Shown here one piece after another: positions 18,273 through 60,533 of a stretch of 64,000 nt of DNA (the stretch's first letter is position 1; each line of letters begins with the position of its first letter). The notes beneath the pieces were generated by a model. The model ran no database searches. It saw nothing but the letters and a program-made list of their open reading frames with translations, and was not told the origin of the DNA. Origin of the DNA: Trichoplax adhaerens (lineage: Eukaryota > Animalia > Placozoa); assembly GCF_000150275.1 (NCBI RefSeq), contig NW_002060943.1, positions 8,645,070-8,709,069 on the forward strand, in the 5' to 3' direction. A program made the translations under genes and the position numbers.

Positions 18273-21200
18273 CTAAAATACCCTGCTACTCGGTGCGAAG
18301 ACTTCTTCTTGGAGAGGCATATCATTTATAATTATGGAACTACTTCTAATTGAACCACCCCGTAAGGAACCACCTTGAACAGAATTACTTCGAACACTGT
18401 AAGTTCTATCAGATCCTTTCATTTCAGTATCAAGATCGCTATCTTTTAAATTTAATCCAACGGCTACAGGGGTGCTATCATCAATTTTACTCAATGAAAT
18501 CGTTTTTCCTTTCTGCATCTGTTAGTAAAGAGAAAAAAACGAAGTGATATTTAGATAACTGACTAAAAAATTAAGAAGTAACGATACTGACTAAACTATT
18601 GAAAGATATCCCAAATTATGCTATCGTAGTCAGTTATCGTGCTACAGCTTACTGTAAATCATAGTGATATAAATATCCTTAGCAATCATCGGAAGTAATC
18701 TTACCGCTTTAACTGTAATGTCATGGAAGGAATTTGCTTTCACGCGAGAAATCTTTACTGTATCAACTATTACGACCAAAGCAGTATAGATAAGAAAAGA
18801 AAGAATTAAAGATTCATTAACTTTTCCGTTATGACATCAAATTGAATAATTTCATTTTTCACAACAGATTAATTACATTTGATAGCCATAGCAGCTTGTG
18901 AAGTGTGCAAACACACGTGAAATCGAAAGCCAACCATCAGCGGGTGAGCAACCTGAAAGAAAATGCTTAGTGATGATGGAATCTTGCAAGAAGATTGAAA
19001 TCTACACGTGGGTAAGAAAGTTAGTTATTCATGAATGAGTTGATTGATAGATAGCACCATTATGTCTAGCTATTGCTGACTTATAGACAAAGTTGATCGC
19101 TCGTGAAAACGTAAACTACTGTACGGAATAAAAAAAATTAAGAAACTTAAAAGTTATGCGATTGTTCAGTGAATTATGCATTCATAGTTAATGTTGATCC
19201 TTAAATCTAATCATATACATTAACAGATCTAAATACTATATTCGAAATTGTTCACTGTCCATAAAGCCAAGGCAACAGTTATAAGATTTTAAGCAGTCAA
19301 TAAAAGGGCAGAGGCAGGATATACAACGTTAGCAGTGTCTAAAATTAATTTGTACTTACACGTGATCCAGGCTGACGGTTTCTTGATCCACTATTTCGGC
19401 AATAAATTGTGAAATGAACAGCCAAGTCATGAATATAAACAAGAAATTAAACCAAACAACCCTGCGGTAATGGTAAAAATTGGTAGGAACATGGATGAAG
19501 AATCCCATTTGCAAGAACAAGCTAATAACATGTATAATACTCTTGACACCAGAGTAATACAATTTGGACTCCATAGATTCATAATTTTTATCATTGTACA
19601 ATATAAGCGCTGCACCACCATATAAACCCCAAAATAATAAACCTACCCAGCCCATAACAAAGATCAGAATCTGGGTATATTCATGCTCTTCAGTATCAAT
19701 CTCTAGTTTATTATACCATAATAGAAATAACACAATTGCTATGCACATGATACCAACAGCGTCTAAGCTAATAGTTAGAATGGTATCGTTGGCAATGGCA
19801 GGTAATGCAAAGTAATTGCCGCTAATGTTAAGAATTTTCAATATAGGTATAACTGCTGTTAAAGGGCCCAATGAAAATGCTAGTAATCGACACCAGTTTT
19901 CTAAGCCCTGAAATGGTCGGCCACGCCGACGATGAGTATAACAGTTTGATAAATCATCTGTAGCTTGATGAATTTTTTCCAATCCCATAGCTTTTTCATA
20001 AAATACTGTGGCACATAATAATCGATAATCGACCACTAATGCATCGTAGACGACTACAAATAAACTGGCAGCGTTATGAATAGCGAAATCGATTCGTCGG
20101 CGCTGTAGATTTGCATGAATTTCAAGTAGTGAATCTAACCATTCAAATAAATTCCAGACTGCCATCAGCTTTAGAAACAAAATGGCCTGTAATCGGCGAC
20201 TTTCAATTGGTTGATGCCCACGCATACGATATCGAATCATACCGGCTTACGGAAATATAAGATAGTAAGAGAAAATAAAGGTTTATAAAGTTTTATAAGG
20301 TTTACTAATTATAATTAAAATAATTAATATTGATAGACTAGTTTATTCTTATAGCAAAATGTTTATATATTATAATGATCAATTATCTAAGGTAAAGTAT
20401 TTATTCAAAAAATAGTAAAAGAAATACATAAAACATTCTATACTACGATCGATTAAAGGTGTAATATTTTTATCTATAATGATTTATTGAGTGAGACTAC
20501 CCTAGATGTCTGTTTATATGACATGAGCTGTAATGTGGATAGTGCTATGGAGTAACTTTTGTGCAGCAACTGCAAGGTAGTTTTCATATTATAACTTATC
20601 TAGGAATGCATCGATCATGATTATCTTATATGTATTTTTTATAGATAATCACATAGCTTTATAATATTGTCCATGTGCCGATAATTAATTAATGTTTATG
20701 TAAATTCACTATAAATTGTATGATGTTTCTTTAAGATTTGGATTCAGTTTAGTTTAAGAGACGAATTATTAGCTGTAAATTCCTGGGAATAGGAAGATCG
20801 CCAATATTTATAATTGTAATATAGATAGTTATCGGGAAGGACGGACCTGACGATAGACTCGTAGTTTAATTATTTCTTGTTGTAGTTGTAATTTCCTCAT
20901 TACGGATTTTGATTTATAATATATAATCTATCAAATAGTATATTATTGCTCTCTAAAATAACAATTTATCATGTGAGACTATCGTAGACATACACCCTTT
21001 TAAAATATATTGTACTATATATAGTAAAAATTATATTATTTCTCGTAAATCAATGATTTGTTTCGTAAGGCTAAAATACTGTAAATATACATATATATAA
21101 AATATATTGCACAATAATCTATCAAATAGTACATTCTTTCCCTTTGAAATAACGATTTATTAAATGAGATTATTCTAAATATACATTCATTTTTAGTTAA

Positions 21201-23230
21201 TGAAATGCATGAATAAAATTTAGAAGACCAGAGCTAGAATGTGAATAAAGATTTCCTGTTATATTTAATAGGATCAAGTAGAAGGACGAGATTAAGATTA
21301 GATTATTTAAAGAATTATCTTACCTTGAATTAATTTCTGTACTGTAAATATAATGGCACCAGCATAAAATAACGGCAAATTTCGGATACATAGATCAGAA
21401 GGTGCGGTAGTTGCATGTACTTCAGCTGATGTAGGATGTACAGAATGAGGTACTTCAGAATGATTTACTGAACGCTCATGATGTCCTGGGGCAGCTGTAT
21501 GCGGTGCTGCAGTAGTTGTAACACTAGTTGAATTACAAGATCCAGTACTGTTCAGCAAGATAGGTAGGAATATAAAGACGCTATCAGCTACTGCTAATGG
21601 AATAGTTAGCCATGCAATGATATTGATCAAATAGCCTTCATCAGCTTCACGACTATTTCTTTCTGCTACTGCGTTAGTTTGTTCATGCTCAATTGATAGA
21701 ACATTCTGATGAGAGTGAAAGTGGGGATAACGCTTTCCTATTTCATGTGCTAACTTTTCGTTATTGGCTGTGGCCGATATAGTATCACCCTGAGAACTTT
21801 TAATATGTTCATCTTCACAGTCTCTTAATTGATTGACCATTATCAGGCCGTTAAGTAGCTTCCTCTTATCTGTAAATAAATATATTGTATATGCAACCAT
21901 ACCTACGCAACCAATTATAGCCACGCTGACGATACGGTAACCTCTCAAAATAGCGTTCGTGAAAATAGTGGTATTTAAGATAGCAGATCCACGAAAGATA
22001 AATGTTAAAACAATAAGTATCAACCAAAAAGCAAAGCTAACTGCCGGGATTTTAGTTACCCTATGAGATAGATATCCTAAGGGGGGAAAAAAATAGATCA
22101 GTTCTTGTATAAAGCAATATAGCACTGTATATTTCCTTTTATCTAGCCTGTATTTGTGTTAACCATTGCATCGTGGGTAACTCAATCATGATTTGTTATA
22201 AATCATAGAAGCTGTAGCAAAAGATATATTATGTACGAATCCTTATATATTTCTGTATTGAATAAGCAAGATATTTATATCTCAGTATATCATGTAATAG
22301 TAAAGACACTTGTTAGTTAATGAAACATTATAACTAACGCAGCAGCTTAGGAATAAGGGAATTATAAACGCTATATAAACTCTTAGATTCATCAATAAAA
22401 TTAGTCTTTCTTCTTCATCCTCAATAACTCTCGTTTAGTAACATCAGTAAACTAAATATATAATTAAAACTAATGAAGAAACTGTTATAATCTACCGATA
22501 TATTAGATATCTATATTTTGTAGAAGAAAACTTTTCACGCTAATTTGGTTTACTAACGTTTTGAATAACTGAAGTGCAATTAATGTACTGTATATTTAAA
22601 TATGTATTGAGATGCTTATCGATTTCTAATAAAAAAAAGGAGCTAATTTTTTCTTTTAGTTAGTTTCAGGCCTTAACTTATACTGTAGAATTTAGTATCA
22701 GGATGTCTGTTCTCTTCATTACAATCATCACAGTTCGTAATTTCTTGATTGGGGTTTGCTAGTATTACTTTGTGTTTATAATAAAATTATCAACTATCAA
22801 GATGATATTGTCGCTACCCTAACTTCATTAAATTTTCTAGCTAAATCAGCCATAATATGAGTAAGATCTTTATCAGGTTATCATTACAAATTATATATTT
22901 CTAAAATATTACTGTTGATATTTAAATGGCTATAATCATATAGGCAGCGATATTCTACTCTTAAAATAATATGATGATTAAATATAAAGGAAGATTTGAT
23001 GGTATAATTTCTTATTCGAAACTATGATAATTACTTGAACATGGGATAATGAAGGCAACAAGTAGAAATGCACCAGTCCAAGCGGCAAGTAAAATACTCG
23101 AAGCGTCAGTGTCTTCATTTGTACAATGCGCACGCGGACAGGCTTCGGATGATTGCCTACTCGTATGCTTTACTGCTGCTCCAATTAAGTGAAATTCTCC
23201 ACCATGATTTGGATCGTAAAGATGCGCCAT
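18273..23230 (-). CDS. Otopetrin-family (OTOP-like) multi-pass membrane protein, putative proton channel, about 755 aa
   Basis: Exons 23230-23035, 22076-21324, 20245-19360, 19001-18877, 18766-18705 and 18518-18273 are GT-AG and phase-consistent (2268 nt). About 12 TM segments in two halves. Motifs QKLIQ, WNLFEWL, VDYRLLC, HVISLFLQMGFFI and the terminal HPLMVGFRFHVC match the otopetrin PLxIF(Y/F)R(F/M)H signature. Exon 4 is not in the ORF track and was read manually. Confidence 0.72.
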
Positions 23231-31100: not shown

Positions 31101-33132
31101 GTCGTATAACTGACACTTATATTAATTAGATAAACGGACATACCGGTTAATAGCTAATTACTTGAGAAACATGGTGTAAGGTTTTTTATCGTATTACGAT
31201 TTACATAAATTAGATAAATGGCCATCCGACGGGTTAGTATTAACATAATGTAACATTAACTGCTTTCATATATCATCACTGACTTTGTATATATCATAAT
31301 TTGGATGCATTACTAGCAAAGTAGTTTGCTTATTTCTAACAAGACTAATTTAAATACTGGACATTAATACTGTGAGATAGCTAGCATTCATCATTTCCTA
31401 GCGATTAAAGGAGCATCAGTAGGACTTAAAGCACTATCGGCTTACTACGATAATCGAAATAAAATTAGTTTATACCCTGGTCGCTGACTACTATGATTGG
31501 AGTAAATTAGCTTTACATGCTGTACTATATATCTATTTTACTCGCTATTTCTAGCATTTTAAATAACATGCTGATATCAGAGTTCTTACATTAATTTTTT
31601 AATTTTTTAATATAATAAAGTAAATTAGATCACGATACCTAGCGTGGGTACGACTTGGGCTACGATTTTAGAATTAGTCTTACGAGTAGATCTGTCCTTG
31701 TGTGCTGTAAAGCATACTACAACGACTTCGCTGATATTTATCCATAAATCATAACTACGGCTTACTTAGTCCAGAAGTATCAGTCTAAACAGTGAAAGTT
31801 GTAATTGAAAATTTGTTAAAGTAAAATGATTTACAGTATATACTCATAAAATAAAGAATTTACTGATATTTACCCACCGATAATGAGTTATGCTTAGGTT
31901 GAAAGTTGCTTAGGCTATGTATGTTGAAGGAATTACAAAATGTGAGTTAAAATTTTCCAACTTGATAATGTAAAGTAAAAGGCACTTATTGAATAGGGTT
32001 GAATTATTTAGATATTCCATCTACTCTCTCATAGATGAAAATCGTGCACCAATGGCGTTGATGGTGACTACATCACATGAAAACCTTGTAATATTTCAAG
32101 TCTATGTTGTCGAGGTCATTTTATATAATTACACTTACTTAATATTATGGTTCTGAAAATTTACTATGTAATGGTAGCAAAAAGAGTAACTACTTCCTAA
32201 TACATAGTTTTTTGATTCAATCTAGTCACATGAAATAAAATTACTTATTCAGTAACTGAGTGAATCCTACTGTCTATTAAATTGGAAATATCTGCTTCTA
32301 TTTTTGATTTTCTTTCATAACATATCTCCAGCATACGGTTAGCAAAGCATTCGAGTACCAGTAAGAAAGCAGTACTAAATTAGGGATAATTATAGCTTCC
32401 GAAATCAGTAAAATATATATATGAACGTGACCGTATGCGAAGTCGGTCATTTTGCAAACATCACAGAAAATCAACCGTATAGAATGATTGATATTGATAA
32501 TTATACATTAACAATTTTAATCATATATTCAATGTAGGACTTTAACTATTCAAGCCGATTGCCTGTACTGATGATCGATATACAGTATAGGAGTTAGAAA
32601 CAAGCCTATAATTGTATAGTCTGAAATTATTTCTGTAGTAATATATTTAATATACTTGCTATAGGGTAGAGAATGCCTTCGTATATAAACTTTGATTACC
32701 TTATACAACGTAAATACTGAAGTCTTAATTGCTTAAATTATTCGTTACTCTACAACATGAGTAAGTGCGAAATACAATGGATGCTCTAGCAGCAAAATTT
32801 CAAAACATATACCAAAAAGCTGCCTAAGGAATAAATTATTGTAATTAAACCTTTCTAGCTCGAGTGTTACTGTATACTTAGATCAGTTTTAGGGCTGAGA
32901 TCATTACTACGCAAACGTACATGATGTATGCTATACGCATTCGTGATTTATTTAGATATCCAAGATATTGATTTAAAGAAAAGTGGACGAAACATTTATA
33001 CCAATTCTTGTCACAAACACTGTAGCTTTAACGGATTGACAAATTTTTCCAAAATAAGTTACGTAGAACTTTATTACATTACATTAAAAATTAAAAAAAT
33101 CGTAAATAATAGCAGTAGCAATTACTCCTGTT

Positions 33133-33653
33133 TGCGACACAAGAAAACAACACAGTACTTATCATAAATTTTACTTTAATCCGCAGATCTACTTCCCTAG
33201 CCTATGGTATTGTTGCTGGAATCCTTACGAAGCACTAACTCGCTCAACACAATAAACGATATAAAGCTATCACACAACTTAGCCTTAACCTGGATCACTT
33301 TTTATAGATCACAGTCCTTCTTATACACTCTTTCGGTACTTACAAGCATATTTATTATACTACTAACATATTTCAATAACAAACATGTTATTACGATTAA
33401 ATTATCAAATACGGGCATTCGAGGTAATAAACAATTTCATACGTAAATCTGTTTCGACTGTAAGAACTGTAAGCTCCTATCTTCTCGATGGATACTTGTA
33501 ACATATTACTATATCATCATAATATCATAATAACTTAGATTATTACTAACAATAACAATTCCTAAAGTAGTAGCTCATACTTCTAAAAAGTTCAAAACAA
33601 AATGTAATCATAAACTACACTTCCATATCTAAGTTATTTTGATGACTGTGACA
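33133..33653. mobile_element. ~520 bp dispersed repeat, copy 1 (TG...CA ends; solo-LTR-like or non-autonomous element)
   Basis: Colinear with and highly similar to 51606-52127 from TGCGACAC to TGTGACA; the flanks are unrelated. No coding capacity and no clear target-site duplication. Confidence 0.7.
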
Positions 33654-45700: not shown

Positions 45701-48700
45701 AATGGAAATATAACGGTATTTGTTAATGATTGCAATTCTATTTGTAACATTCAAAATAGCCGTGCCAATAGTGCTTGGTGTCCGTGATGATCGACAGCTA
45801 ATTATAATTAGACTAAATTACTGATTTGCCACTTTATAATTTCATAATTACCATTATGCCATTGCAAATTTCAGTTATAATTATAATTGTCATAAAACGC
45901 AGATTAGACTAATTCTAAATCCCTTTGACCTACGCATAGCTTCATAAGATATAAATTTGTGCAATACTTTTTATAATTCATCAAATCACAGATATATCTA
46001 TTTTACGAGATAAAACCTCATTTTCTTAGAGTTGATTTTAATTTTTAACATTAATCCAATACTAGCTTGGATTGATTACATTACTCATCATTTGCCAGTC
46101 TGTTGTCTCGTCGCTAATTTTTTAAGTTATCTACTTGAAAAGTTCATGACAGTCTGGTATTTTTGTTTTATCCTTGCCATTCTTATCCTTTCTCACATAT
46201 AAACCATAAACAAGTAACCCCCTTGTTGTTTAAATTCTCACGTTGATGTTACTTACTTTATACTTCTTTCATCAATACGAATGTCTTTCATTTCCAATCA
46301 GCGAAAGTGAAAACAATAACAATTGCCCGAAGCAATCATTTTCTTGTTTTATAGTCATTGTTTTTGACTCTCAACTAATTTTTTGTACTATCTGATCTGA
46401 TCAATTGTATTTTACTCGCCATCACTTAGTGAAAATAGCTTTGATAGTGCCGCAGTGATCTATGTATATATACAGTATATATAGATATGTATATGATAGC
46501 GATGTCGGGAGCCAGTGAGTCGTTATCGATAAGAATGCAAAATAATTTCAACTATGTCAGCCATTCCTTCTATTTTTGAATAGCTCAGATGTTCCGTAGT
46601 TGTGGTATTTTGTATATATCAGACGATAGTCAGCATTGAATTAGATTGTATACTGCACAATCGGTACGATGCTGCACTCCATCACTTAACTGTTACAGCT
46701 AATGTTGGTGTTCAAATAGCATTATAATAATCCGATAGTAAAGTTGGAATCACCATATGAGATGGAGTGACATCGTTATATTATAATAATATAGTGCCTT
46801 TGTATTGTATTTAAGCCCTCTCATGCTTCGAATGACGTACTTTACCTATATCATATTACGATTTATACATCATAATACATGATATTTCGTAGCTTTGCTT
46901 CTTACTAATAAATACGACTGAAGAATGATCATTATTACGATTCAGACCGTCATAATTTTAAACGTCCTATAACTTTTACTGCTATATGTACCTTACTTGC
47001 TTATTATTATCAATACCACTATGACATGATAAAAATTTACGGGTTAAATGCAAAATGTTACTTATAGAGGTCTTGGTATGGTAACTGATAGTGAATATTT
47101 AAATTGTTTTACGCGTTTTAATGCTGTTACTATAGTTGAAGGAGAATTGTCCATCTATAATTTATAATCAATAGAAGCAACAGTTTACCCTTTTCTTTTT
47201 CACTGTCTATGCTAATGAGATAAACTAAAATGAGCTTTGAGCTAGAGAAGGCAAAAGTTTCTTGTAGCCATACTGTGCTTGTTAGCTATACCGTTAGATC
47301 TCAGTGAAGTAACCCACATTGGTCGTCAATTTAATGCAAGTATATGGCTTACAGATTATAGACGATAACTGGAAACAAAGAAGCTATGTTGTATCATAGA
47401 AGTTTAACATGAGTTAACATCGCACAAATTCGTTGTTAATGTGCATTGATAACATCCAGTTAATAGCGTTTTTTACTAGTAACAAACCGAAATTTTTTAA
47501 CTCTTGGAAGAAGAAATGGATCACAAAAAATCGATTGTATGGCATCGAATTATATATAATTATACATAATTTTTCTTTGACTTATTTTAATTCGCGTATA
47601 CAATTTGAAAGTAATGAAATTGTGTATGCAGATGTGTATAGAATAGTACAAGTATATTATTACATACGAGATTGGGAAAACCATTACACTATTAGCGATG
47701 CTGTTATTGATTAATGTGATCGATGTAGTTAAGAGTGCATTAAATACCTCGCTTATAACTGCGCTCTGCGTATGCCGAAGTTTACAACTGCTTACGTCTT
47801 CTTTTAGGGTTATCCTCATGATTTATCTACGACCGGCCACCGTTCACACCCTCCACCGCCACCGCCACCAGCACCACCAGTTACACAGGCGTCACAGCAA
47901 TCAAATGATTTTAATAATAATGGAAGAGATGTAGTAGTAGGAGTTGATTCAATGGAAGAACATTCAATGCATGATCTATCAACAAATTATCATGATGGTT
48001 ACATCGCCAATACTACAGCAGCCGTAAACATTGATCCAATGGGTAAGTAAGAACATTCTGATACTGTAACACGGTATATTAATATAAGAAATTAGTAAAA
48101 TTTTGTTTACAAGTTATACTAGAATTTAATGGAAGTGGAATATTTATTTTGTTCGATGCCTACAATTTAAAATTGATTTAATTTCTAGTATATGAAATTA
48201 TTACTTTACGAGATATGATCAGAACACAATCTTTCATTCGAGAAATTTTTTTTTACGCTAATTATTTTAAAACCTAACATATAATCAAATCTCGGAAAAG
48301 GAATCATAAAATGAATATTGCAAGCCTATTCTATTTTCTCAAGCTATGACTGCTATGTAAATTTGAACGACATACAATCATGATTGACACTTATCTATGC
48401 ATATGAAATCATCGGGATATAACATTACAACTATTTTACCACATAATTCATAGTATTCCTTTGGTTTCATCATCCAATGCATAATCGACGTTATTAGGGA
48501 TCACAGCTAGTAACGTTCTATACTATATTACTATAAGAATGCGATAGATTCTAAAATGGTCAATTACTATGCTTGCTTTGCCTAGGATAATGCAATTATG
48601 AATTTGTACTGTTCATCGTCATTTAACCATACATTATTATTATCGTGATCAATTTCAGTTTATAACTCTAGACAAAGTCGTCTTTATATCTGGTGAAGAT

Positions 48701-50044
48701 TGCACTCTACAATATATTCTTTGGTAAAGAACTTTGATTATATTGCTACTGTCAGTCATCACTATAATTTCACGTTTATTCATAATTTGAAAATTTAAAT
48801 CGAGTTATTTCCTGAGGGAATCTGATTATTTATTTACAATGCAGGCAAAGATGATGTCATCAATATATCTTATTGAAATTTTATAGCATAAAAGCCGTTA
48901 TATTCGTCTGCTGCAGCTTTTCCTTCTACTAATTGATTTAAACACTGGTTTAATGGCAGAAACTATTAGCAGATGACGTAATTCCCTACAGATCGAATTA
49001 TGAGACGTAGAAAATTACTATATTTTTTCATACATGCGATTGAAACTTACCAGTTGTTTAATTCTGTGAGAAGTATTGTATCAAAGAGACCTGAACTGAC
49101 AGTATTTCCTTAGTAAATTTCTATCCTCTTATTGTAGTTATATAGTAATACTTTATAACAATGTGGCCGGTACATCGTAATCAATATTCACGTTATAACT
49201 TTCGTCGCTACCGATACAAGATTGATTTCAGTTGTCGAAATTTAAATGAATTTTTGCCAAATACTGGCTGGGAAATATGATTTTTTACTGGTCATGCGAC
49301 CTTTACTATTTAAGGGTAATGAGTATGATAGTATAAATTTTAGTAATATTATGTATCGATAGTTCCTAATTACTATGCCAATAACAACGTTATTATCATG
49401 TATTCTTTCGAACGTTAAGTCCTTGTAACTGAGCACAAGTTGTGATTCCATGCCTGAAATATAGCAAGTATTGAACAATTTTATGATGGGTGTATTTTCG
49501 TTAAGTGATTACGTCAATGACTATTAAATTTTCATAAAAAAATGTTGCTACGAGAGATCGATAGCGACAGTAATGCGCGTACGTTTTATTCCCTACTTCA
49601 TAATAGAGCTGAATTAAACATTAATTATTTTAGAGCTTAGCTTGCTGAAGCAAATGCGTACGATAATTGTGGTAGCAAATATCGATGACTGCATTATTTG
49701 AAATAACATATGGTAATTAGAGCAACAGTGTAAGCACAACGCCATGAGTTTTTAGCTGCTTACTGTCATATTCGTCTAATTAAAAATCTAGGCACAAGTT
49801 TTATGGTTATTTTGTGAGTGACAAATTTACCATTAAATTATGAATTGCAGAGCTATCAAGCTAGTCGCAAAGTAAATACGAAGGTAGAGGTAATTATATT
49901 TCAAAATCTGGTCAGAATAGGAAGCAATGTCAGCTTTTTTACGATTCAGGTGATCGTACCTGAAAGGTAGTGAAGTTCTACTAGTTAAAATGGCATTGGT
50001 TTGCATTGATGAAGTTCCATTGAAATTCGGGATTTTTATAATTG

Positions 50045-50084
<40 letters not shown>

Positions 50085-53000
50085 TATATACTTAATTATT
50101 CGATAAAATGGATCATAGTTTTCTACTAGCAGATGTCCCATGAGATTTAGAAAAACATTTTAATTGTGTTCATTTGCGTAATAATTTAGTAATTTGATAC
50201 ATTTAGCAAAGAAATCAATCAGAGGACTGATAGATTACGAGATCATTTCGGACATGATGATGTCCCTTGGGATTTATTTGTGTAACTATTCATTGGTAAC
50301 TTACTTTATTCAATAATATATTGATTAGTGTGGAAGTCCAAAGATCATAGTTTCACATTAAGTACCGTAGTTTCCCTGAAACTAAGAAAGATTTAATTTA
50401 ATTTATGTCTATTCACTTAATAGATATAGCAAATTACTATATTTAGGAGACGAGTTAAACAGAAGCTCACAGGCTAAAGCATGGACCACTAGAAGCATAT
50501 TTCTAGTAATCCATGACCTCAGGTTCTTACCAGAAAAGGTCTCTTGGGAGTTAGAGAAAGAAAGGCTTCGATTGCTTATGTATATGAACTTACATTAAAG
50601 CATAATAGTTATATTAAATTAACAGTGGAATTGATTGCAAACTTATTGGGTCATATTGTTGCTTTAATTTAAGTCCCTTGGGACTGCAAAGGATTTGAAC
50701 CACGCTTGTTACGTAATTACTGAGTAAGATACTATATTTGGCAATGGGCTAGAGTTACTTGAATGTAGTATGCACCAGCTGAAGTCCCTCGGGATTAGGA
50801 AGGATTTTAATCACAAATATTTTATTTATTCATAGTTTGTTGCATGTACAATGAAGTTGATCAAAGACTTGTTAGATTGCACTATTGTAACGGCCTATGT
50901 CCCTTGGGAACAAAAACATTTACAGTTAATTGTGCCTGTGTACGTAACATTTAAGTAGTTTATTATATGCCTATTCATGGTAAATCGATCAGAGAACTAG
51001 TTGATTATAGCTTGTACTGCCTAATGTCCCTTGGGACTCAGAATAATTTAATTGTAATTGCATATCTATTGCGTTAGTAGCGTATTGTCTATTTAACCTG
51101 AGAGTTAATGTCTGACCAGATAGGCTATACTGTCGTGCTAGTTAGTGTCCCTGAGGACTGGGAGATTTTCTTCACGCTCATATATATGTTTTGGCTTGAT
51201 ACTGTATATTTCGACATTTCTTGAAAAGCTTAAGGAGTTATAATTGGTACTGTCAAATGTTCCTTAGGACTCAAACTAATTATAGTAGTTACTCCTGTGT
51301 ATTCGTTTAATAGCTTACCAATCTATCATACTGCATGTCTTAACGATAAAATTGATCAAGATTTAATAAACTATACTCTTGTACTAGCTTATGTCCCCTG
51401 GAAGAAAGAAGATGCAATTACAATTATTTACGTAATAGTTTACTACTTACTATTAGAAACAGTGGATTGGATAACGAAATGATAGGTTATGTAGTTTTAC
51501 TGTAGCTAGTATCCCTTGGGATTAAGACTGATTTAGTCATATCTATCTGTTTAATAGATTAATCGGTGAGCAGATGAGTGACTGACTCATTGCCACAACT
51601 ACCCTTGCGACACAGGAAAACAACACAGTACTTATAATAAAACTTTACGTTAATTCGCAGAACTACTTCCCTAGCCTACGGTATAGTAACTGGAATCGTT
51701 GCGAAGTACTAACTCGCTTAACTCAATATACAATATAAAACTATCACGCAACTTAGCCTTAACCTAGATCACTTTTTATTGATCACAGTCCTTCTTATAC
51801 ACTCTTTCAGTAGTTATAAACATATCTACTATGCTACCAACATATTTCAATAACAAACATGTTATTACGTTGAATTATCAAATATGGGCATTCGAGGTAA
51901 TAAACAATTTCATACGTAAATCTACTTCGACTGTAAGCCCTGTCAAACTCCTATGTTCTCGATACTTACTTGTAACATATTACTATATCATCATAATATC
52001 ATAATAACTTAGGTTATTACTAACAATAACAACTCCTAAAGTAGTAGTTCATACTTCTAAAAAGTTTAAAACAAAATGTAATCATAAACTACACATCCAA
52101 ATCTAAGTTATTTTGATGACTGTGACACTCGTACACTTGATACGTTTTTATTTCTTTGTTAGCTTTTGTAAGCTGTAATATTTGAACTAAAGCGCGAATT
52201 AATGACCGGCACTAGTTGATGTCCCTTGGGACTAGAAAAGATTGTAGTTACACTTATTAGCGTAACAGTTTAGTAATTATCTATTTAACAGAGAAATAAA
52301 CAAAGGAGCTAAAGTTAATGAATTGTACTTCGCGCTAGTTAATGTCCCTTGGGATTTGGAACAATTTTAATTACAGACACTTCTTTAACCGGTGATATGT
52401 CCGTTTATCTATTACTGTATCAACGGTTAAGCCAACGAATGACCTGATTGATCACATTGTATCATCTAAGTTCCTTGGGACTAGAATAAATTTTAATGCA
52501 CTCTGTAAATTGTTACCGGTAAATTGCCATATTTTATAGTGAAGTCTTTCAGTGCAGTTAATCAATGATCTGATAGTTACATTGTCATACTGGTTGATGT
52601 CTCTTGGGACTAAGAAAGATTTAATATAATATATTTGAATATTATTACTGATCTGATACTTTACGTTGCCGCACTAGTTGATGTCCCTTGGGACTAAAAA
52701 TTGCTTCAATTATATCTTTTTGTTTTAATGTTTACATAATAGTTCAGTAATTACTATATTTAGTAACGAAATGGGTTACAATAGCTGGTAGATTATAGTT
52801 TACTATCGCTAATATCCCTTGGGACTAAACTTTAATTACATGCCTTTATTTAATAGGTTAGTAAAATTATTATCTGCTATATGGTAAATTGATGAATTAC
52901 CGGATTGATTGCATGNNNNNNNNNNNNNNNNNNNNNNNNNNNNNNNNNNNNNNNNNNNNNNNNNNNNNNNNNNNNNNNNNNNNNNNNNNNNNNNNNNNNN

Positions 53001-56000
53001 NNNNNNNNNNNNNNNNNNNNNNNNNNNNNNNNNNNNNNNNNNNNNNNNNNNNNNNNNNNNNNNNNNNNNNNNNNNNNNNNNNNNNNNNNNNNNNNNNNNN
53101 NNNNNNNNNNNNNNNNNNNNNNNNNNNNNNNNNNNTCACGGGTTGATTAACAATAACTAGCATCAGCGATGTCTCTTAGGACTGATGAGGAATGTTTCGA
53201 CTACATTCACTTATCCGTTAGCTTTTAGTATTTGAACAGTAAGTTAATTTATGACCTTAAGATTACACTATCATACTAGTTGATTTCCCTTGGGACGGAA
53301 GAAGTTGCAATTACACTTATCTACCTAGTAGATTATGGCTCATGGTAGGTGGTGTCCCTTGGGACTGAGAGAGAGATATTGTATTTATACTTATTTAAAT
53401 AATAGATTATGGTTCGTGCTAGGTGGTGTCCCTTGGGACTGAAAGAAATTGTAATTATACTTATTTATGTAGTAGATTATGGTTCGTGCTAAGGCATGTC
53501 TTTTGAGACTGGAAGAGATTGTAATTATACTTATTTACGTAATAGATTATGATTCGTGATAGATGATGTCCCTTGGGACTGGAAGAGATTGTAACTTATT
53601 TATGTAATAGATTATACATAGTTCGTACTAGGCGATGTTCCTTAGGACTGAAAGAGATTATGGTTGCACTTATTTATATGATAGTGTAGAAATAACATTT
53701 TTAACAATGGAATAAATAAACAATAGATTATAGTTTCAGCTAACTGGTGTCCCTTGGGACTTATTATAGTTTTAACTATATTTTTATGTTTAATAGTGTA
53801 GTAGCTATCTTATCTAAAACCTTTAATTTAATGAATAACCTGATTTATTACATGGTTGAATTAACTGATGTCTCTTGGGGATAAGAATGGCTATTGTTGC
53901 ATTTAATTATGCATTAGCTAGCTAATTGATGTCCCTTGGGACTAGAAGAAATTGCAATTACCCTTATTTACGCAATAGCTAAGTACTGTAGCTGATATAT
54001 ATCAGAAGTGATTGAGATAGATAGTGGAGTTGATAGATTATGGTTTCTACTAGCTTAATAATTTTATTTTGAAGCTAATGGCTTTTATTTAACCTTAAAT
54101 TGATACTTAGTGATAGGTCGTTTGCTGTCATGCTCTTGACCTATTGAGGAAAGTGTAGTAATTGTTTATTAAAAACTATGCTAATAATATCTAAATAATT
54201 ATACATCTTGTCAATCAATCATTCGAAATAGAGAGGAATAGTACTTGTAGCTACAACTTGCATGTATAATGTCATTTATAAATAGTAAATTGCTATAATT
54301 AAATCTTAAATTGTTACCAAACGAGGGAGATCTTTATTTGACAGTAAATTAATATTTTAGAATGATTTGCAGCGGTCAGTATCTTCCAACTGATTTGTTA
54401 TACTCCTATTCTATTAAGTGCTGCACTCTCTTTGTTGAGATTATACTCACTAACGCACTGCATACTGTCACGTTATTGAAATGTCTATCTATATATACAA
54501 GCTAGGGAAAAGTATGGGTTCCTTATCAACACTGCCAGTTAGATAATACACTCATCATGAATGGATGTCCCTTGGGAATAACAGCAACCATAAAACAAAT
54601 TGCTGTTACTCCCTAGGGAATTACCTTTATTATCAAGAATTATTAACCAAGATGATGAAGTCCCTTGAGAATTGAATCGAGTTTTATCAGTAAAATGAAT
54701 AAATTATTATAGCCACAACAACCAAAGCACCAGTTATGACAGATCCGAAGTAGGCCAATGCGATTTACCTTTTGAGACTAACTTTTAATCTTTATCGCTA
54801 TATAACTTCGTGTTAAGCTATTGCCGAGCAGAGAACTTAAATTAGCTGCTTTTCATTAGTGTTGACATAATTACTGTCCCTTGGGAATAAAACTATTCTT
54901 TTGGAGGTCCCTTGGGAATAACCAATTCATCTTCCGGTTTCTATAACTACCAGTTTCGTCGTCCAGCTGTCCAGTGTCCACCTGAGTATACCCTTATGAT
55001 ATTATGCATACTAGTCAATTTGTAACAGTATCTATTAAGTAGCAGGAAAATAGATGAGAATAAATGTTACAGCAGTTTTCGGTGTATTAGAGTTGTACGA
55101 AGTTCTATAAATGATCGATTATGGTTCTTTTTGAATCATACTGGATGAAGACAAACTTCACAACGTCGAGCTACTTCTACTTTATTCCGACTAATACGAT
55201 CAACGCTATGTTCTCGTGAAAGCTATAAAATCAATTATTAACGAGCTGCATTCGCAATAACGAGTCAATCGCAAAAGCTTAGTCGACCTAACCTATATAA
55301 GCAGAAATATACTGCGACACAAATACTTAATCTATATTACTGTTCAAGGTGCATTTGCACCCTGACAAATTCTTATAGTCCGTGTATGTGTCCAATTGTA
55401 TAGTGCATGCTTATGTGTGTGCGTGTGATATATACAGGTTGTGATATCGCTCGAATCATAGTATTGCCTACGAATTATTTAGTATCTGTGGTGATTTTTA
55501 TACGGGTTATTTTGTTTCAGTTAAGTCGCACTTTCTAGTGGGACTGAGTTTGTAAATGTAATTTGGTGCCAGAAATAATAATGCATCAAAGTGGATTATA
55601 CGGTGCATAACAACTTATTATTGGGACCCTTTCCATGTAATCAGTTAAACTAGGTAGTTTTATGTGCTGGAGCTGAAGTAAATAATGCTTTAAATATCTA
55701 AAATTATGTAGAAGTTATTTTTATACTGCTGATATCGAAAATTTTCAATCTCCGATAAATTAGCGAAAGGTTTCACTACATTTTGAACGCTTTCAGAGTA
55801 CTTTCTACTTTATGATCTATGACTTGCCCGCATGAATTAGCAATAAGTAACTAATATTAGCGATAGTTGCGTTTAATTTTAAAAAGTTGCTAAATTTCGT
55901 AAGGGATAGTCTGTTTCTATATCAAATGCAGTTGATATATATTTGCAATTTTGATTATTGTGAAACTGATAATTTTCTAAGCCTTTTGACCTATAATCGT

Positions 56001-59000
56001 CATCCAGTCTTAGTTTATGTATCTACTATAATCCAGGGACTATGAGTTGGAATTAAAATCATTCCAAAGTTATTATACCGTACAATATATTTTATACTGG
56101 CTGTTAATTTAAGCATTTCTAGCCAATTTTATATATATGAGTATGTTCCAGCGCTAATCCAGTATAGCTATAAGTACAGTTCTCTGAACTTTTAGCTAGT
56201 CTAACGTAATTTTTTCCCAACTTACGAAAGAAGTAAACTCAACAGCAGATATCCCACTATATCTTAAAGTTAGATATTACTTTTTGATAATTCAATTTAT
56301 TTTAAAATCAACTTGTAATGGCTGTGGTATGGACTACGCTCATACCTGTATATTTTAGAAATTGTTATTGTCCGTAATACTTGGGCATTTTTTCTTTTAG
56401 AGGAGTTAATTTTGCAGTCCCATTTATTATTATAAATACTGATCTCAATCACCATGATCACCCACCATTCAATTTTATGATAAAATAATTATGAGTTATT
56501 CTCTATTCTAAAATTCTCGAAAGAGTTAAACTCACTAATTATTAAGTAATTGTATGTGATTTTTTTAAACTGCGAAACCTCACTTTATGTGTATTACTTA
56601 ATTATTTAACTCGATTATTCACAGGCTTAATCTGATTTAATATGTACGTTTCTTATATCTCCTTCACCGTTAAATTATTCAATACGATAATAATGGATTC
56701 TTACACTCTTAATGAATTTAATTGATACAATTGATACCATTGATCTCTTTGTTAATGAAAAATATTTTTAAATTTAATAAAGTTAGTATTATCGCTTTTT
56801 TTAAATAATTTAACAAAGTTTTTAAGATATTGCCTGCATATTTGACTTACTAGTAAGGTGTATTGATAGATAATTACAATTATTTGTAGGGTCATATTGA
56901 TTTATTATTCTTTTTCAATAGGCCATACAGGTAAAGGTAAAGACATTTACTCAATCTATGGAGTTGAGAATCAGGTAGAATTGTTCGGCCTTAAATTTTT
57001 ATTATGTAATTGTATAACTTATTAACGATTGCTTTCCGTTGCTATATTAGATTGGTAGCATACCTCCATACAATCATCAACCAGTTGTTGATGTTAACCT
57101 TCATCAGAGTATACCAGCAGCAGCTAATCCAGAGAATGAAATCAACGTCTCTGAGGATTCCCAAATGTCTATGACTACATCAGCATTAAGTGCGGAGAGA
57201 GCAAGAAAAACTAAACGCAAAATGGCCGAACCAATAACTCCGCAGCAGGTACCTTGATAACAAAGATAAATTTGATAATACTCAAGTTAATGCATCTGTT
57301 TAGCAGATTATTTACGAATGATTTTGATAACTTGAGTCAAAATTGTTAATCCAATTTTATTACTTATAGATTTATCCAGATTCAGCAAATGATTCTATAC
57401 CTCGTGTTGTGCCTAATCATGGTAGTAATTCATGTCCTGATCAATTCTTTCCTCGTAAGTTAATGGGATTAATTTGTCAACTAAAAATTAAATACCTTAG
57501 CTCTAATCATATACGTGCTTTGTTGGTCATACGTTTCATCTTTCTTTTAGACTCTGACAGTAGTAGCGAACTATGGCAAGCAAATCACGTACAACATCAT
57601 AACCAGAATAATTTCCCTCCAACTGTTCCTACAAATCAGGACTCTATAACGCCTAGTCCGGTATATTGACATCAACAATCATGAAATAGTATAGTTAATC
57701 TTAAATTATATGTTGTGGTTATAAGAGCATTAAGCAATCTATTTTTTTAGCGGCTGTTTAGCTCTTATGCAGAAATTATTATATTATTATTTAATAAAGT
57801 TTATAAATTCTTTTACATTGAAATTGCGTAGCATTACAGCAACTTACCTTTGGACCACAACTCGATAACGTCAGAACAGATTAATTCAAATTACTCTGGA
57901 ATTTCTAATTATCAACATCTTAATCAACATCAGCCTATGATAGTAAATAATACAGCCTTTGGATCTACACCTGGTCATGTTAATAGTCCAAGTGGGTATT
58001 TACTACAAACATATTTCTGATGCTTTAAATTTAGACGCTACAATTTTATTTTTCGGCTTTCTTTAGAAGCCCGAAGGTTAAGAAGTAATTATACATAGAT
58101 TATTTGTAAAATTTTTTAATAAAATGCGCTGTTTTTTCTTAAAATTGCAAATTATTCAAAATTCAAGATTTACCCCATGCAGGCGCTAGCGGGGTATGTT
58201 TACTATTTAGACTTATTACATAATCACACTTAAATTGAAGTCATTCCATCAAATTTGAATATTGATTACTTTGACAATTTAAATACTATATTTCAGGTAT
58301 ATCAATCAGATAATGCCACTTCTACTTATTCTTCGACTCCATCAACTCCATTAACTACAGAAGCACCTATCACAGTTGACAGACAAATGTCAGGTATGGG
58401 ATAATCAAGTAAATCAATTTACATTTAATTTTGGTTAGCATTACTTCGAAATTTGAATGATTAACGTAACATGATTATGATCAAATAAGGAACGCCTAAT
58501 ACTACAATGTCATCATGGCATCGTCCTCAAATCAATGGAACAACAAATCAATTTAACAATGTTATGACTGGAGTAAGATTTGTTTCTAAAATCAAAATCC
58601 TTGTTAATTATAATATTTCAGTCATTTGAGTCTACTGTCTTACAATAATAATATGTAAGTAGAGTACAATTTTATACACTTGCTAAGTTTGACATTGATG
58701 CAACGGAATTAGAAGTATTATGAAACAGTGATGACGTTATCGCTTGTTAGATATAATATAATAATTTCTACATTATAGCAACCGGTGAGAGTTAACGATC
58801 GCTTGGATGATGCCATCACGGTTTTAAGAAATCACGCAGAATTTAATGCTCCTAACTATCAAAGTCAACATAGCAGTGTTGTTTACAACTCTAATGCTTT
58901 CACTAGTATGCCCATAACTGTTAGTGAAACAAATACGATGGATACAATGGTAAACAAAATAGGGTAGATTCTAATGTAACATTCAATACATATTTTATTT

Positions 59001-60533
59001 ATTACTGTCAATATGAATTCGTTCGTTCTTAGGTAACTCATGCGGTTGACGTTGGTGAATCATCAAGTAATCCAATTGATCGAAGTACTAGCTCGAGTAC
59101 TCCACATACTTCAGGCAGCAGTAGTAAGTCTATTATTTGCTTTTTACACTTAAGATTATTTTAAGCATTGTCCATAATTTTACTTATCTGTATAATCTTA
59201 AGGAAGTTTGGTGATTCTTTTTTTTTATATTATTATTCTATTTAGCATCGACTTTGAGTATTGCAGTTGCATGCAATGAATTTGATGATCCATGTCTATT
59301 TAAATGCGTATGTAGCGTGCTAAATGTATGTTGTGTTTACAATATATTTGTGTAATAGGAAATTTAAAATTAAATAAGCGTGATAGGCAACAACGTCATA
59401 AGACTGAAGATGTAAAAGATGAAGGTGATGAATCTACAGAACGAATACAACGCGAACACGATAGAAGACACGCAAATAATGCTCGAGAGAGGTATGGTCT
59501 ACATAAAATTAATTAATGCCGGAAATAAAGATGATCGATGGATTGATGTCGAATTGCTAACACTTATGGTTTCAATAGTTATTTAAATACTTCTCGAATT
59601 CATTTCTAATGTAGAATTCGTGTCAGAGATATTAACGAGGCATTTAAGGAGTTAGGGCGAATGTGTGTTATTCATGCACCATCAGAGAAGGCCCAAACTA
59701 AGGTAACAGACATATCCTACACGTTTTATGTTAGGTTAAATAATTAAATATTCGCAGTGACATGCTTAAGTTGATTTTAATACAAGCAATGTAAAATCTG
59801 AGATTCTAATGAAATAAATATTAAATATACGTATATATTTAAAAGAACCATAAAATAGATGGTATTACTATATCACCGTTAACCGTAACATCGTAATTGT
59901 CAGAATATTTCAAAATTGAAATCGTAACCTTACTTGAGTTTTTTATGACAATATTAGTTATCTATTTTACATCAATCGGTTCAAGTAATAACGCAGTTGG
60001 AAGCCCAAGTTCGAGGTAAATAGCATTATATTGCTGTGGTAGTGATACTAATAATTCTATATATGCGGTACCATTTGATTACGGATGAAGAAACAAATTA
60101 CTATTATTTCAACTTCTGTTATTCAAAATCGGATTGATAATTTGTTTGTAAAGTGATATACTAATCATTGATTTTGGTATATATTTTAGAACGGAATCTC
60201 AACCCTAAAGCAGCTTGCTTAAAACATCGTGAAGAAGAGAAAGTGTCTAGCGATAGTTACAGTCCATCATTTAAGAACTGTAACGATGACGATAATGAAC
60301 TAGATGATAAATTCTTTCTTAATCTAAATAAAGTAGGACATCGTGGTAGTACTGATGATGATGATGATGCTATTGATAGTATCAATGCAAGTTGTGGTGG
60401 CAATAATAGACACCATGTTAATCAATTATTTGGATCCAATTCAAATTGTCTAGCTAGTAACGATAATAACGATATTCCAAACGGAGATTTTAGCGAAATA
60501 ACTAAGCGATCTGACAGTGGTACCAATATGTAA
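39799..60533 (+). CDS. TCF12: Class I bHLH E-protein (TCF3/TCF4/TCF12, daughterless orthologue)
   Basis: Spliced bHLH reads [10 protein letters not shown]|[17 protein letters not shown]...KAQTK|[19 protein letters not shown]|[12 protein letters not shown]; AD2-region motif [13 protein letters not shown]. Inferred exons: 39799-39857, 41304-41403, 42510-42552, 45402-45502, 47808-48042, 56922-56974, 57051-57248, 57370-57454, 57551-57660, 57832-~57995, unresolved micro-exon(s) in 58067-58193, 58297-58393, 58490-58572, 58779-58949, 59033-59123, 59359-59491, 59615-59702, 59958-60015, 60190-60533. The symbol denotes the family (pro-orthologue of TCF3/4/12). The 5' exons are less certain than the bHLH exons. 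Confidence 0.9.
43571..43875. repeat. Tandem repeat, 3 x ~85-90 bp, in E-protein intron 3
   Basis: TCTATTAAGTCAAGTCAATAACCCAGGGACACTA...ATTAGAC(G/T)GCAAACTG(A/G)ACTAGT(C/T)GA(C/T)GACTAGGTGTA occurs three times. Confidence 0.92.
43778..44025. repeat. Low-complexity TACAG/CTGTA (GTACTGTACAGTAC) tract
   Basis: Dense interleaved TACAGTAC and GTACTGTA words; smaller patches at about 40940-41010 and 43020-43040. Confidence 0.8.
50051..50090. repeat. (TA)n microsatellite
   Basis: About 20 TA units with one CA interruption, immediately 5' of the palindrome array. Confidence 0.95.
51606..52127. mobile_element. ~520 bp dispersed repeat, copy 2, inserted into the palindrome array
   Basis: Same orientation and length as 33133-33653; breaks the ~125 bp periodicity of the array. 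Confidence 0.72.
52916..53135. other. Assembly gap (220 N)
   Basis: Run of N inside the tandem array. Confidence 1.

Follow-up and report, generated by a model that had tools for sequence, protein, structure and literature searches.

A single-locus tandem array with a conserved COE-type palindrome beside the E-protein gene of Trichoplax adhaerens, a candidate cis-regulatory module

The E-protein locus and its tandem array

The window analyzed here, a stretch of 64,000 nucleotides of Trichoplax adhaerens DNA, contains what, judged by its sequence, is the genome's only E-protein gene (TCF3/4/12, daughterless). The exon at 59610-59702 matches the bHLH structures of E2A/TCF4 (E 3e-11), and only one such bHLH locus was found in the whole genome, which bears out the sequence-only reading of the host gene. 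Exons were searched one by one, and the split bHLH exons, taken singly, were not recognized by Pfam. Upstream of the bHLH region, an exon stretch carries a motif that we take to be like the E-protein AD2 motif, and no convincing candidate for an AD1 motif was found upstream. Table S3d of PMC10580291 lists the orthogroup of the host gene among the transcription factors that mark placozoan peptidergic progenitor cells; therefore, the gene is under cell-type-specific control. Its counterparts are Hhon_g02873 in Hoilungia hongkongensis and HoiH23_PlH23_009657 in Cladtertia.

The array spans 4.8 kb (50.1-54.9 kb; Table 1). A candidate coding exon precedes it by 2 kb, and the recognizable E-protein exons follow 2-5 kb downstream. 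It had been placed in an intron of 8.9 kb (48043-56921). This assignment is plausible because the upstream candidate exon has good splice signals, and if that exon is real, the array is intronic; it is a prediction from such signals, and a reading-phase check of the joined exons singled out no definite exon on the downstream side of the array.

Table 1. Features of the array and of the host gene (positions within the window)
Feature	Position	Strand	Remarks
Candidate upstream coding exon	47808..48042	+	open frame; acceptor ttttag, donor G/gtaagt
Minisatellite, left block	50120..51589	+	12 units of ~108-135 bp, all carrying a GTCCCTTGGGAC-type core
538-bp dispersed repeat inserted in the array	51590..52127	.	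non-autonomous transposon-like; not unit
Middle block	52179..52915	+	6 units, one of them 84 bp
Assembly gap	52916..53135	.	true length ~98 letters
Right block	53136..53987	+	10 units, including the 70-bp sub-array and a 61-bp unit
Single-copy spacer	53988..54561	.	no unit homology, no cores; single-copy depth
Tail cluster	54562..54921	+	5 GTCCCTTGGGAAT-type sites, 4 perfect; irregular spacing
Exon stretch with AD2-like motif	58788..58847	+	
bHLH region, four exons	59448..60245	+	59448-59492, 59610-59702, 59958-60014, 60189-60245

The palindrome TCCCNNGGGA occurs perfectly at 20 sites of the window (18 TCCCTTGGGA, 1 TCCCTCGGGA, and 1 TCCCTAGGGA), all of them on the + strand and within 50263-54917, while shuffled sequence yielded 0.02 sites on average and never more than 1. 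When up to 3 mismatches to the 12-mer GTCCCTTGGGAC were allowed, 33 + strand matches were found inside the array region, one of which (51600) sits in the transposon insert and is probably due to chance; an extra degenerate core is present at 50370 in the left block, which holds 6 perfect 10-mers. The cores of the middle block are located at 52221, 52344, 52470, 52599, 52683, and 52814. At up to 2 mismatches, the remaining 59 kb of the window contain no match to GTCCCTTGGGAC. The total amounts to approximately 33 cores, 13 of which are variants with one to three changed bases, mainly C>T and G>A. Thus, the roughly 34 copies with 20 perfect ones that the sequence-only reading had counted, the predominance of transitions among the variants, and the lack of perfect sites elsewhere in the window were all recovered, with one of the cores probably hidden in the assembly gap. 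A second unit motif, TTACGTAA, has 3 perfect copies in the array and a count in the window that is no higher than chance, and E-boxes are not enriched within the window.

Overall, the array is a minisatellite with units of ~108-135 bp, arranged head-to-tail at one locus, and with sub-arrays of 70 bp and shorter. Core spacing in the main array is 111-134 bp, which agrees with the 120-130 bp described before, but the 70-bp sub-array, the single units of 84 bp and 61 bp, and the tail, with core spacings of 42/51/216/31 bp, depart from this value. The 70-bp sub-array (53271-53614, 5.4 copies, 78% matches; also placed at 53276-53657) is younger. A profile built from the flanks only, with the core left out, detected ~28 units, and since the flanks of these units are homologous, the array has its origin in tandem amplification, as had been proposed. 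However, the accompanying statement that the DNA between cores has diverged almost beyond recognition was too strong, as a whole-unit consensus can still be recovered (mean majority fraction 0.65).

The assembly gap is bridged by single contigs of three DNA runs (X2, X3, and X7, representing two organisms and three studies). These contigs join 52914 to 53138, with 98 letters replacing the 223 skipped positions (52915-53137), so that the gap is not 220 letters long and the array is continuous across it. With this correction, the cores on either side lie 232 bp apart, i.e., two units, and therefore one further core and unit is probably hidden in the gap. The borders of the 538-bp insert are marked by loose ends (51589/51590 and 52127/52128), its read depth is 20-40x that of the flanks, and at least 40 full-length copies with 81-92% identity were found elsewhere in the genome.

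Constraint on the core and its genomic distribution

Within the units, the core reaches a majority fraction of 0.89, compared to 0.65 for the other columns. For G/C columns only, which are expected to decay fastest in a genome of 31% GC, the corresponding values are 0.86 and 0.52. Tree-aware site rates determined with IQ-TREE were 0.42 for the core and 1.11 for the rest of the unit (Mann-Whitney p 1e-7), i.e., the core evolves at least 2.6x slower, and when 12-column windows along the unit are ranked by these rates, the slowest one coincides exactly with the core. The length of the unit tree, 11 substitutions per site, indicates that the array is old. Furthermore, 15 of 28 units retain an intact motif, whereas no other 10-column window off the core is intact in more than 3 of 28. 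The conserved block comprises 13-15 bp, with edges that are sharp within a few bases, and the core is common to sub-arrays with periods of 120, 84, 70, and 61 bp as well as to the five tail sites, where the surrounding DNA is non-unit and agrees with the unit profile over the core only. The excess constraint on the core is real, and the concentration of conservation on the core that had been suspected holds against the other unit columns. We infer that the sharp edges of the block are better explained by a protein footprint than by conversion tracts.

Across the genome (105.6 Mb), 120 perfect TCCCNNGGGA sites were found, and one sixth of these, 20 sites, are in this 4.8-kb array. As the 96 sites outside the array compare with 86 genome-wide for a reversed-pattern control, the rest of the genome is at background, and the density in the array (20 in 4.8 kb versus 96 in the remaining 105.6 Mb) lies far above it. 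The 12-mer GTCCCTTGGGAC occurs 10 times in the 105.6 Mb, with 9 occurrences in this array, no copy of the unit DNA was found elsewhere in the genome, and no terminal inverted repeats were found around the array. A genome-wide satellite or transposon subrepeat, which would have undermined the earlier reading, is thereby ruled out: both the 12-mer and the unit DNA are restricted to the locus, and only the 538-bp insert is dispersed. The genome does contain a second small array, which has GATGT plus TCCCTTGGGA in common with the present one, and the ATG prefix is missing at all 32 single TCCCTTGGGA sites elsewhere in the genome.

Two organisms (strains or species) are nearly identical over the array, and 1 of the approximately 33 differences listed between them falls in a core versus 3 expected, a deviation that is not significant. 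None of the array words was found in the run of a third organism, and protein searches with the last exon, directed at the orthologous intron of other placozoans, returned a single fragment of 102 aa on a 636-bp contig. Among metagenome contigs, 29 loci have two cores 110-139 bp apart, none with flank homology to the array; they are taken as unrelated satellites and, probably, coding repeats.

Shape of the conserved block and alternative explanations

The conserved block has the asymmetric form AT-GTCCCTTGGGA-c-T and contains the palindromic core of a COE/EBF site. The palindrome TCCCNNGGGA is identical to the mouse COE site (PMC4312928), and 97% of the ChIP peaks of fly Collier are centred on CCCnnGGGA (PMC4512700), so that the match to COE sites pointed out in the sequence-only reading is upheld. 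The optimum determined in vitro is the 14-bp sequence ATTCCC...GGGAAT, ATTCCCNNGGGAAT (PMC4512700). Compared to this optimum, the main-array flanks (TG...cT) mismatch at positions 1, 2, and 13 and match with T at position 14; the T after GGGAc, the equivalent of position 14 in the 14-bp EBF site, deviates in 1 of 26 units. Tail sites show GTCCC as their left and GGGAAT as their right side. While the central NN of a COE site is free to vary, the central TT of the array is conserved like the contact bases: it deviates in 5 of 56 cells (8.9%), the contact bases in 20 of 224 (8.9%), and the A/T columns of the flanks in 31% (P 7e-5). In addition, the 5' AT-G is kept and the symmetric 3' position is not. 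The conserved TT together with the one-sided 5' AT-G therefore implies a constraint that exceeds a plain COE homodimer site in width and differs from it in shape.

Several explanations other than a COE-bound cluster have to be weighed against these properties. It is unlikely, though deserving of serious consideration, that the array is a neutral minisatellite without regulatory role, with the core homogenized by unequal exchange or by short gene conversion starting at the core. Conversion at the core has been proposed for minisatellite core sequences, the units of 70, 84, and 61 bp point to repeated local re-amplification, and the double-variant core GTTCCTTAGGAC, identical at two distant places (51259 and 53637), could reflect conversion. 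However, conversion tracts usually extend over tens to hundreds of bases, which would fit poorly with the sharp block edges, and GC-biased conversion across units is not seen, because G/C columns off the core are the least conserved (0.52). Moreover, in-register exchange is impossible for the five tail sites, which have kept the core although the DNA around them does not belong to the repeat unit, and we know of no mechanism that would make this core word a hotspot.

It also seems quite improbable that the array is a selected platform for a factor other than COE (e.g., a lineage-specific zinc-finger or architectural protein) whose recognition sequence, the longer and asymmetric ATGTCCCTTGGGAcT, would overlap with the COE palindrome only incidentally. 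The asymmetry of the 13-15-bp block and the inclusion of the central TT would be accounted for, as would the otherwise unenriched perfect COE palindromes of the genome (96 versus 86 in the control) and the recurrence of GATGT plus TCCCTTGGGA in the second small array. Yet to our knowledge no factor for ATGTCCCTTGGGAcT has been described, the ATG prefix is missing at the 32 single sites mentioned above, and the core is a perfect COE site in a genome that encodes COE. An architectural candidate, the placozoan loop-anchor motif, is reported at thousands of promoters, with no sequence given (PMC12221973); due to the mismatch with the 10 occurrences of GTCCCTTGGGAC, the word is not this motif.

An intronic array of small RNA genes (C/D snoRNA-like or hairpin), with the core as guide or stem element, is very improbable. 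Some units have TGATG before and CTGA after the core, loosely resembling C and D' boxes, and contigs of an RNA library cover most of the array. However, only ATGT of the C-box-like word is conserved and not its TGA, and no Rfam family reached E 0.1 over 48000-57000, the only match being one to mir-194 (E 0.3) at a hairpin of the tail. Consensus folding of 10 units yielded only the trivial 4-pair palindrome (-3 kcal/mol) without compensatory change. The RNA contigs were rejected as a sign of array transcription, as they are collinear with the DNA and of low depth, consistent with pre-mRNA or DNA carry-over; on the grounds of the Rfam result and the lack of a conserved fold, the RNA gene array was discarded. 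Finally, an assembly artefact, or a dispersed repeat as the unit, is scarcely credible, since despite the gap and a contig-breaking (TA)n tract within the region, the array was recovered at single-copy depth, and its gap spanned, in independent contigs of three DNA runs from three studies, and the unit DNA was not found elsewhere in the genome.

A candidate COE-bound cluster and its relation to known systems

Against these alternatives, we tentatively favor, with a confidence just short of an even chance, that the array is a homotypic cluster of ~34 sites with the core under purifying selection, and a candidate COE-bound cis-regulatory module of the E-protein gene. An old single-locus minisatellite would have grown by tandem amplification beside this gene, after which purifying selection would have held the 13-15-bp block AT-GTCCCTTGGGA-c-T while the other ~110 bp per unit drifted. 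The block may be bound by a dimeric sequence-specific factor, most likely COE/EBF, and the bound cluster would then act as a cis-regulatory module for the E-protein gene. COE is the leading candidate binder because the conserved block contains its palindrome TCCCNNGGGA; protein binding as such, the identity of the protein, and regulation of the E-protein gene are each predicted from the sequence.

Consistent with this proposal, the animal encodes a single COE/EBF protein with an intact, EBF1-like DNA-binding domain, annotated as TriadG28406 in PMC10580291. The corresponding gene (C1407:1286830-1290587) has PF16422 exons, one exon of the DNA-binding domain matches EBF1 structures (E 2e-14), and all residues of the zinc knuckle H-x3-C-x2-C-x5-C are in place. 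Within the portion of the progenitor marker list of PMC10580291 considered here, EBF is absent. Trichoplax ATAC-seq, H3K4me1/3 ChIP, and Micro-C datasets have been published (PMC10580291 and PMC12221973).

A further-reaching version, which we regard as doubtful, is that selection holds the ~34 redundant COE sites as a very-high-capacity COE input to the E-protein gene, either a super-enhancer or a titrating sink; if true, the partnership of COE and E proteins seen in vertebrate lymphocytes and in neuronal differentiation would be older than neurons. The number of sites is itself a point to be considered, as ~34 redundant sites would be hard to maintain by selection on each, which counts against the favored homotypic cluster.

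Distal regulatory DNA of placozoans is only starting to be mapped. If COE does bind the array, two ancient neurogenic regulators would be connected, in an animal devoid of neurons, by a cis-regulatory link that is concrete and simple to test and that involves a marker gene of peptidergic progenitor cells. Binding would also make the array a clean natural case of a tandem-duplicated element that selection has pruned to the binding word. If it is not bound, the array would still be a rare minisatellite with a sharply bounded conserved core, for which a mechanism is needed.

The array shares with Jeffreys-type minisatellites the variable units around a short conserved core, the single locus, and the irregular sizes from local re-amplification. 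However, classic minisatellite cores are G-rich, found at many loci, and linked to recombination, while the present core is palindromic, restricted to a single locus, and agrees with a known transcription factor site. The array resembles the sites of COE/EBF/Collier/UNC-3 in its 20 exact copies of the 10-bp palindrome, in the retained T of position 14, and in the complete right half GGGAAT of the tail sites, and the cognate factor, with a conserved DNA-binding domain, is encoded in the genome. On the other hand, known targets have one or few sites per element and not ~34 in tandem, and the array additionally conserves the central dinucleotide and the 5' AT-G, with main-array flanks that are off the optimum. 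The E2A-EBF1 circuit of B cells likewise pairs an E protein with a COE protein, but in vertebrate lymphocytes, while the placozoan locus offers a hint of COE input. Binding of proteins to long tandem repeats is exemplified by the macrosatellite DXZ4, which is bound by CTCF. Homotypic clusters and enhancers derived from tandem repeats differ from the array, known so far as sequence, in that one sixth of the perfect sites of a placozoan genome are gathered here in 4.8 kb, an unusual scale; they resemble it in the many tandem-duplicated copies near a regulatory gene and in a site that is better kept than the unit around it.

Repeat anatomy of the array

An exact search of the window recovered 20 TCCCNNGGGA sites, all of which lie within 50263-54917 in a single orientation (18 TCCCTTGGGA, one TCCCTCGGGA and one TCCCTAGGGA), with a mean of 0.02 expected by chance from dinucleotide shuffles. 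With as many as 3 mismatches to GTCCCTTGGGAC tolerated, 33 plus-strand matches were found in the array region, and the other 59 kb of the window contained none at up to 2 mismatches. The match at 51600, inside a transposon insert, is probably due to chance, and a double-length interval between cores is filled by a degenerate core at 50370. Variant cores mostly carry C>T and G>A changes (TCTC, TTCC, AGGA, GAGA), in agreement with the sequence-only reading.

Tandem Repeats Finder detected only the youngest part of the array, a 70-bp sub-array (53276-53657, 5.4 copies), and the alignment of core-anchored segments yielded a consensus across the whole ~120-bp unit, in which the words ACTAG, ATT, TAATTAC, TATTTAYGTAATAG and TTAGTA recur. 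With a flank-only profile (76 downstream columns, core excluded), nearly every core between 50152 and 53987 was found to be followed by a unit. The array is therefore a true minisatellite of ~28 units, with a census that is independent of the core. The earlier statement that divergence has left the flanks almost unrecognisable was overstated, as the off-core majority fraction averages 0.65. The assembly gap at 52916-53135 is spanned by single contigs of three DNA runs, which come from two organisms and three studies, and the array is therefore continuous across it. In these contigs, 98 letters replace 223 skipped positions (52915-53137); after length correction, the flanking cores are 232 bp apart, corresponding to two units, and one further core is probably hidden within the gap.

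The 538-bp element has a read depth 20-40x that of its flanks, loose ends mark both of its borders, and at least 40 full-length copies with 81-92% identity occur in the genome. It was inserted into the already existing array, and its family probably represents a non-autonomous transposon. A second copy lies 17 kb upstream (33132-33653). Among the tail sites, three of the five share GTCCCTTGGGAATAA. The first two sit at either end of an inverted repeat (54567-54620; GGGAATAACAGCAA / TTGCTGTTACTCCC), which could fold as a ~14-bp hairpin with a weak mir-194 match (E 0.3, far under the gathering score). Two class-A E-boxes (CAGCTG and CACCTG, 15 bp apart, 54964-54984) sit in a threefold GTCCAGCT micro-repeat, 46-61 bp past the final site of COE type. 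The window as a whole shows no E-box enrichment. On its 5' side, the array is bordered by a (TA)20 microsatellite (50051-50090), at which the contigs of every run break.

Features of the array, its host gene and related loci (window coordinates unless a contig is given)
Feature	Location	Strand	Remarks
Candidate upstream exon	47808-48042		acceptor ttttag, donor G/gtaagt
Dispersed 538-bp element	51590-52127		not unit DNA, from copy number, depth and loose ends
Single-copy spacer	570 bp		between minisatellite and tail sites
Tail sites	54562-54921		five sites; unit-profile match over core only
AD2-like exon stretch	58788-58847	+	downstream of array
bHLH over four exons	59448-60245	+	downstream of array
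Second small array	G000:C1391:419697-420009 (L014 5697-6009)		25-bp period, 12.5 copies, higher-order 75 bp
COE/EBF gene	G000:C1407:1286830-1290587 (L015-L018)	-	exons match PF16422

Conservation and distribution of the core

That the core is conserved above the rest of the unit was borne out by four measures. The majority fraction is 0.89 in the 12 core columns compared to 0.65 in the other columns, and 0.86 compared to 0.52 for columns with a G/C consensus, where the fastest decay is expected in an AT-rich genome; these values are unchanged without the young 70-bp units. An alignment-free, ungapped profile at raw offsets revealed the same conserved block. Tree-aware site rates (IQ-TREE, HKY+G) are 0.42 in the core and 1.11 elsewhere. 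Of all 12-column windows in the unit, the one that evolves most slowly is exactly GTCCCTTGGGAC (Mann-Whitney p 1e-7). Summed over the tree, the branches amount to 11 substitutions per site, showing that the array is old. Furthermore, the TCCCTTGGGA stretch is identical to the consensus in 15 of 28 units, compared to 3 of 28 for the best off-core window. Core anchoring could inflate this contrast, a concern that is limited by the census based on flanks alone and by the profile at raw offsets. The observation is real, and there is good support for the core being conserved in excess of the rest.

The array is nearly unchanged in runs of organisms A and B. Of the ~33 differences listed beyond the insert, a single one hits a core, where ~3 would be expected (not significant); this change, 51398 C>T, affects an already degenerate core and leads towards the consensus. 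None of the array words was found in the run of a third organism, and a protein-based search for other placozoan contigs returned only a 636-bp fragment. When metagenomes were scanned for pairs of cores one unit apart, 29 loci were identified, none with flank homology to the array.

Across the genome (105.6 Mb, 1414 contigs, ~31% GC; window, G000:C1414:8645070-8709069), 9 of the 10 occurrences of the core 12-mer are in the array. TCCCNNGGGA occurs 120 times, compared to 86 for a reversed-pattern control; 20 of these sites are in the array and 4 in the second small array, and the remaining 96 are at background level. This second array, the sole other TCCCTTGGGA cluster in the genome, is built of GATGTATTCCCTWGRGA units that, like the main array, contain GATGT plus the core; no gene could be recognised up to 10 kb away from it. 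In eight metagenome contigs (L057, L070, L075, L077, L078, L082, L084 and L085), a 128-bp satellite with ~90% unit identity, 42-44% GC and flanks unrelated to the array has one copy of the array 12-mer TGTCCCTTGGGA in each unit; given the large number of tandem repeats in the scan, this is probably coincidental.

Host gene and COE/EBF gene

Single-exon searches provided the matches to E-protein exons: exon 59610-59702 matches the bHLH structures of E2A and TCF4 (E 3e-11) at the only E-protein bHLH locus in the genome, and the exon stretch at 58788-58847 resembles E-protein AD2. The candidate upstream exon, together with the lack of another sizeable open frame between 22 kb and 47 kb, suggests that the array is probably intronic in the E-protein gene. 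RNA-library contigs over the array are of low depth and collinear with the DNA and do not prove transcription. Labels read off the translation were assigned to three upstream long open frames: endonuclease/exonuclease/phosphatase-like (4166-6461, +), seven-transmembrane receptor-like (11246-12292, -) and multi-pass membrane protein (19356-22125, -). Approximately 25 kb without long open frames separates these neighbours from the E-protein exons. The placozoan atlas gives a single TCF3/TCF4/TCF12 orthologue per species and includes this orthogroup among the peptidergic progenitor marker transcription factors of its Table S3d; EBF is annotated there and was not among the marker entries examined (PMC10580291).

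The genome encodes a COE protein; a COE gene in Trichoplax had already been described (PMC2990012, PMC3117877). At the locus found here, one exon matches EBF1 residues 26-71 (E 2e-14) with a stretch of 20 identical residues, the zinc knuckle (H-x3-C-x2-C-x5-C) is intact, and the DNA-binding domain is spread over at least 5 exons. One matched stretch has stop codons, presumably from intron read-through. As in the array, GTCCC often opens in vivo EBF1 motifs. The dimeric EBF1 site is TCCCNNGGGA (PMC4312928). In vitro, the optimal COE site is ATTCCCNNGGGAAT; for Drosophila Collier, CCCnnGGGA lies at the centre of 97% of ChIP peaks, with positions 13 and 14 enriched for A and T (PMC4512700). COE is the best known candidate binder of the core, but its known properties leave the conserved TT and 5' ATG unexplained.

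Shape of the constraint and possible explanations

The conserved block reads AT-GTCCCTTGGGA-c-T. At its central TT, 5 of 56 cells deviate, a rate equal to that of the eight COE contact bases (20 of 224) and below the 31% of flank A/T columns (P 7e-5). The 5' AT and G are retained in 82-86% of the units. Constraint is loose at the 3' C (deviating in 8 of 27 units), and the next T is near invariant (1 of 26). From these counts, the constraint exceeds TCCCNNGGGA in width and is asymmetric. The edges of the block are sharp, with background reached within a few bases, from which we infer a better fit with a protein footprint than with tracts of gene conversion. A functionless minisatellite, in which the repeat's own recombination dynamics would keep the cores uniform, seems unlikely. 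A different factor recognising the longer, asymmetric word is another rival reading, which we consider rather improbable. An RNA structure was rejected because variant cores show no compensatory changes across the palindrome, the consensus fold of ten units has only a trivial four-pair stem and no Rfam match was found; likewise, a genome-wide satellite or transposon subrepeat was rejected, since no copy of unit DNA was found elsewhere in the genome and the array is not bordered by terminal inverted repeats.

A cluster of predicted binding sites, built by repeats and selected, with COE as the leading candidate, is tentatively the best explanation. As such, the array would belong with the homotypic site clusters derived from tandem repeats, among which it would be unusual in scale and host.
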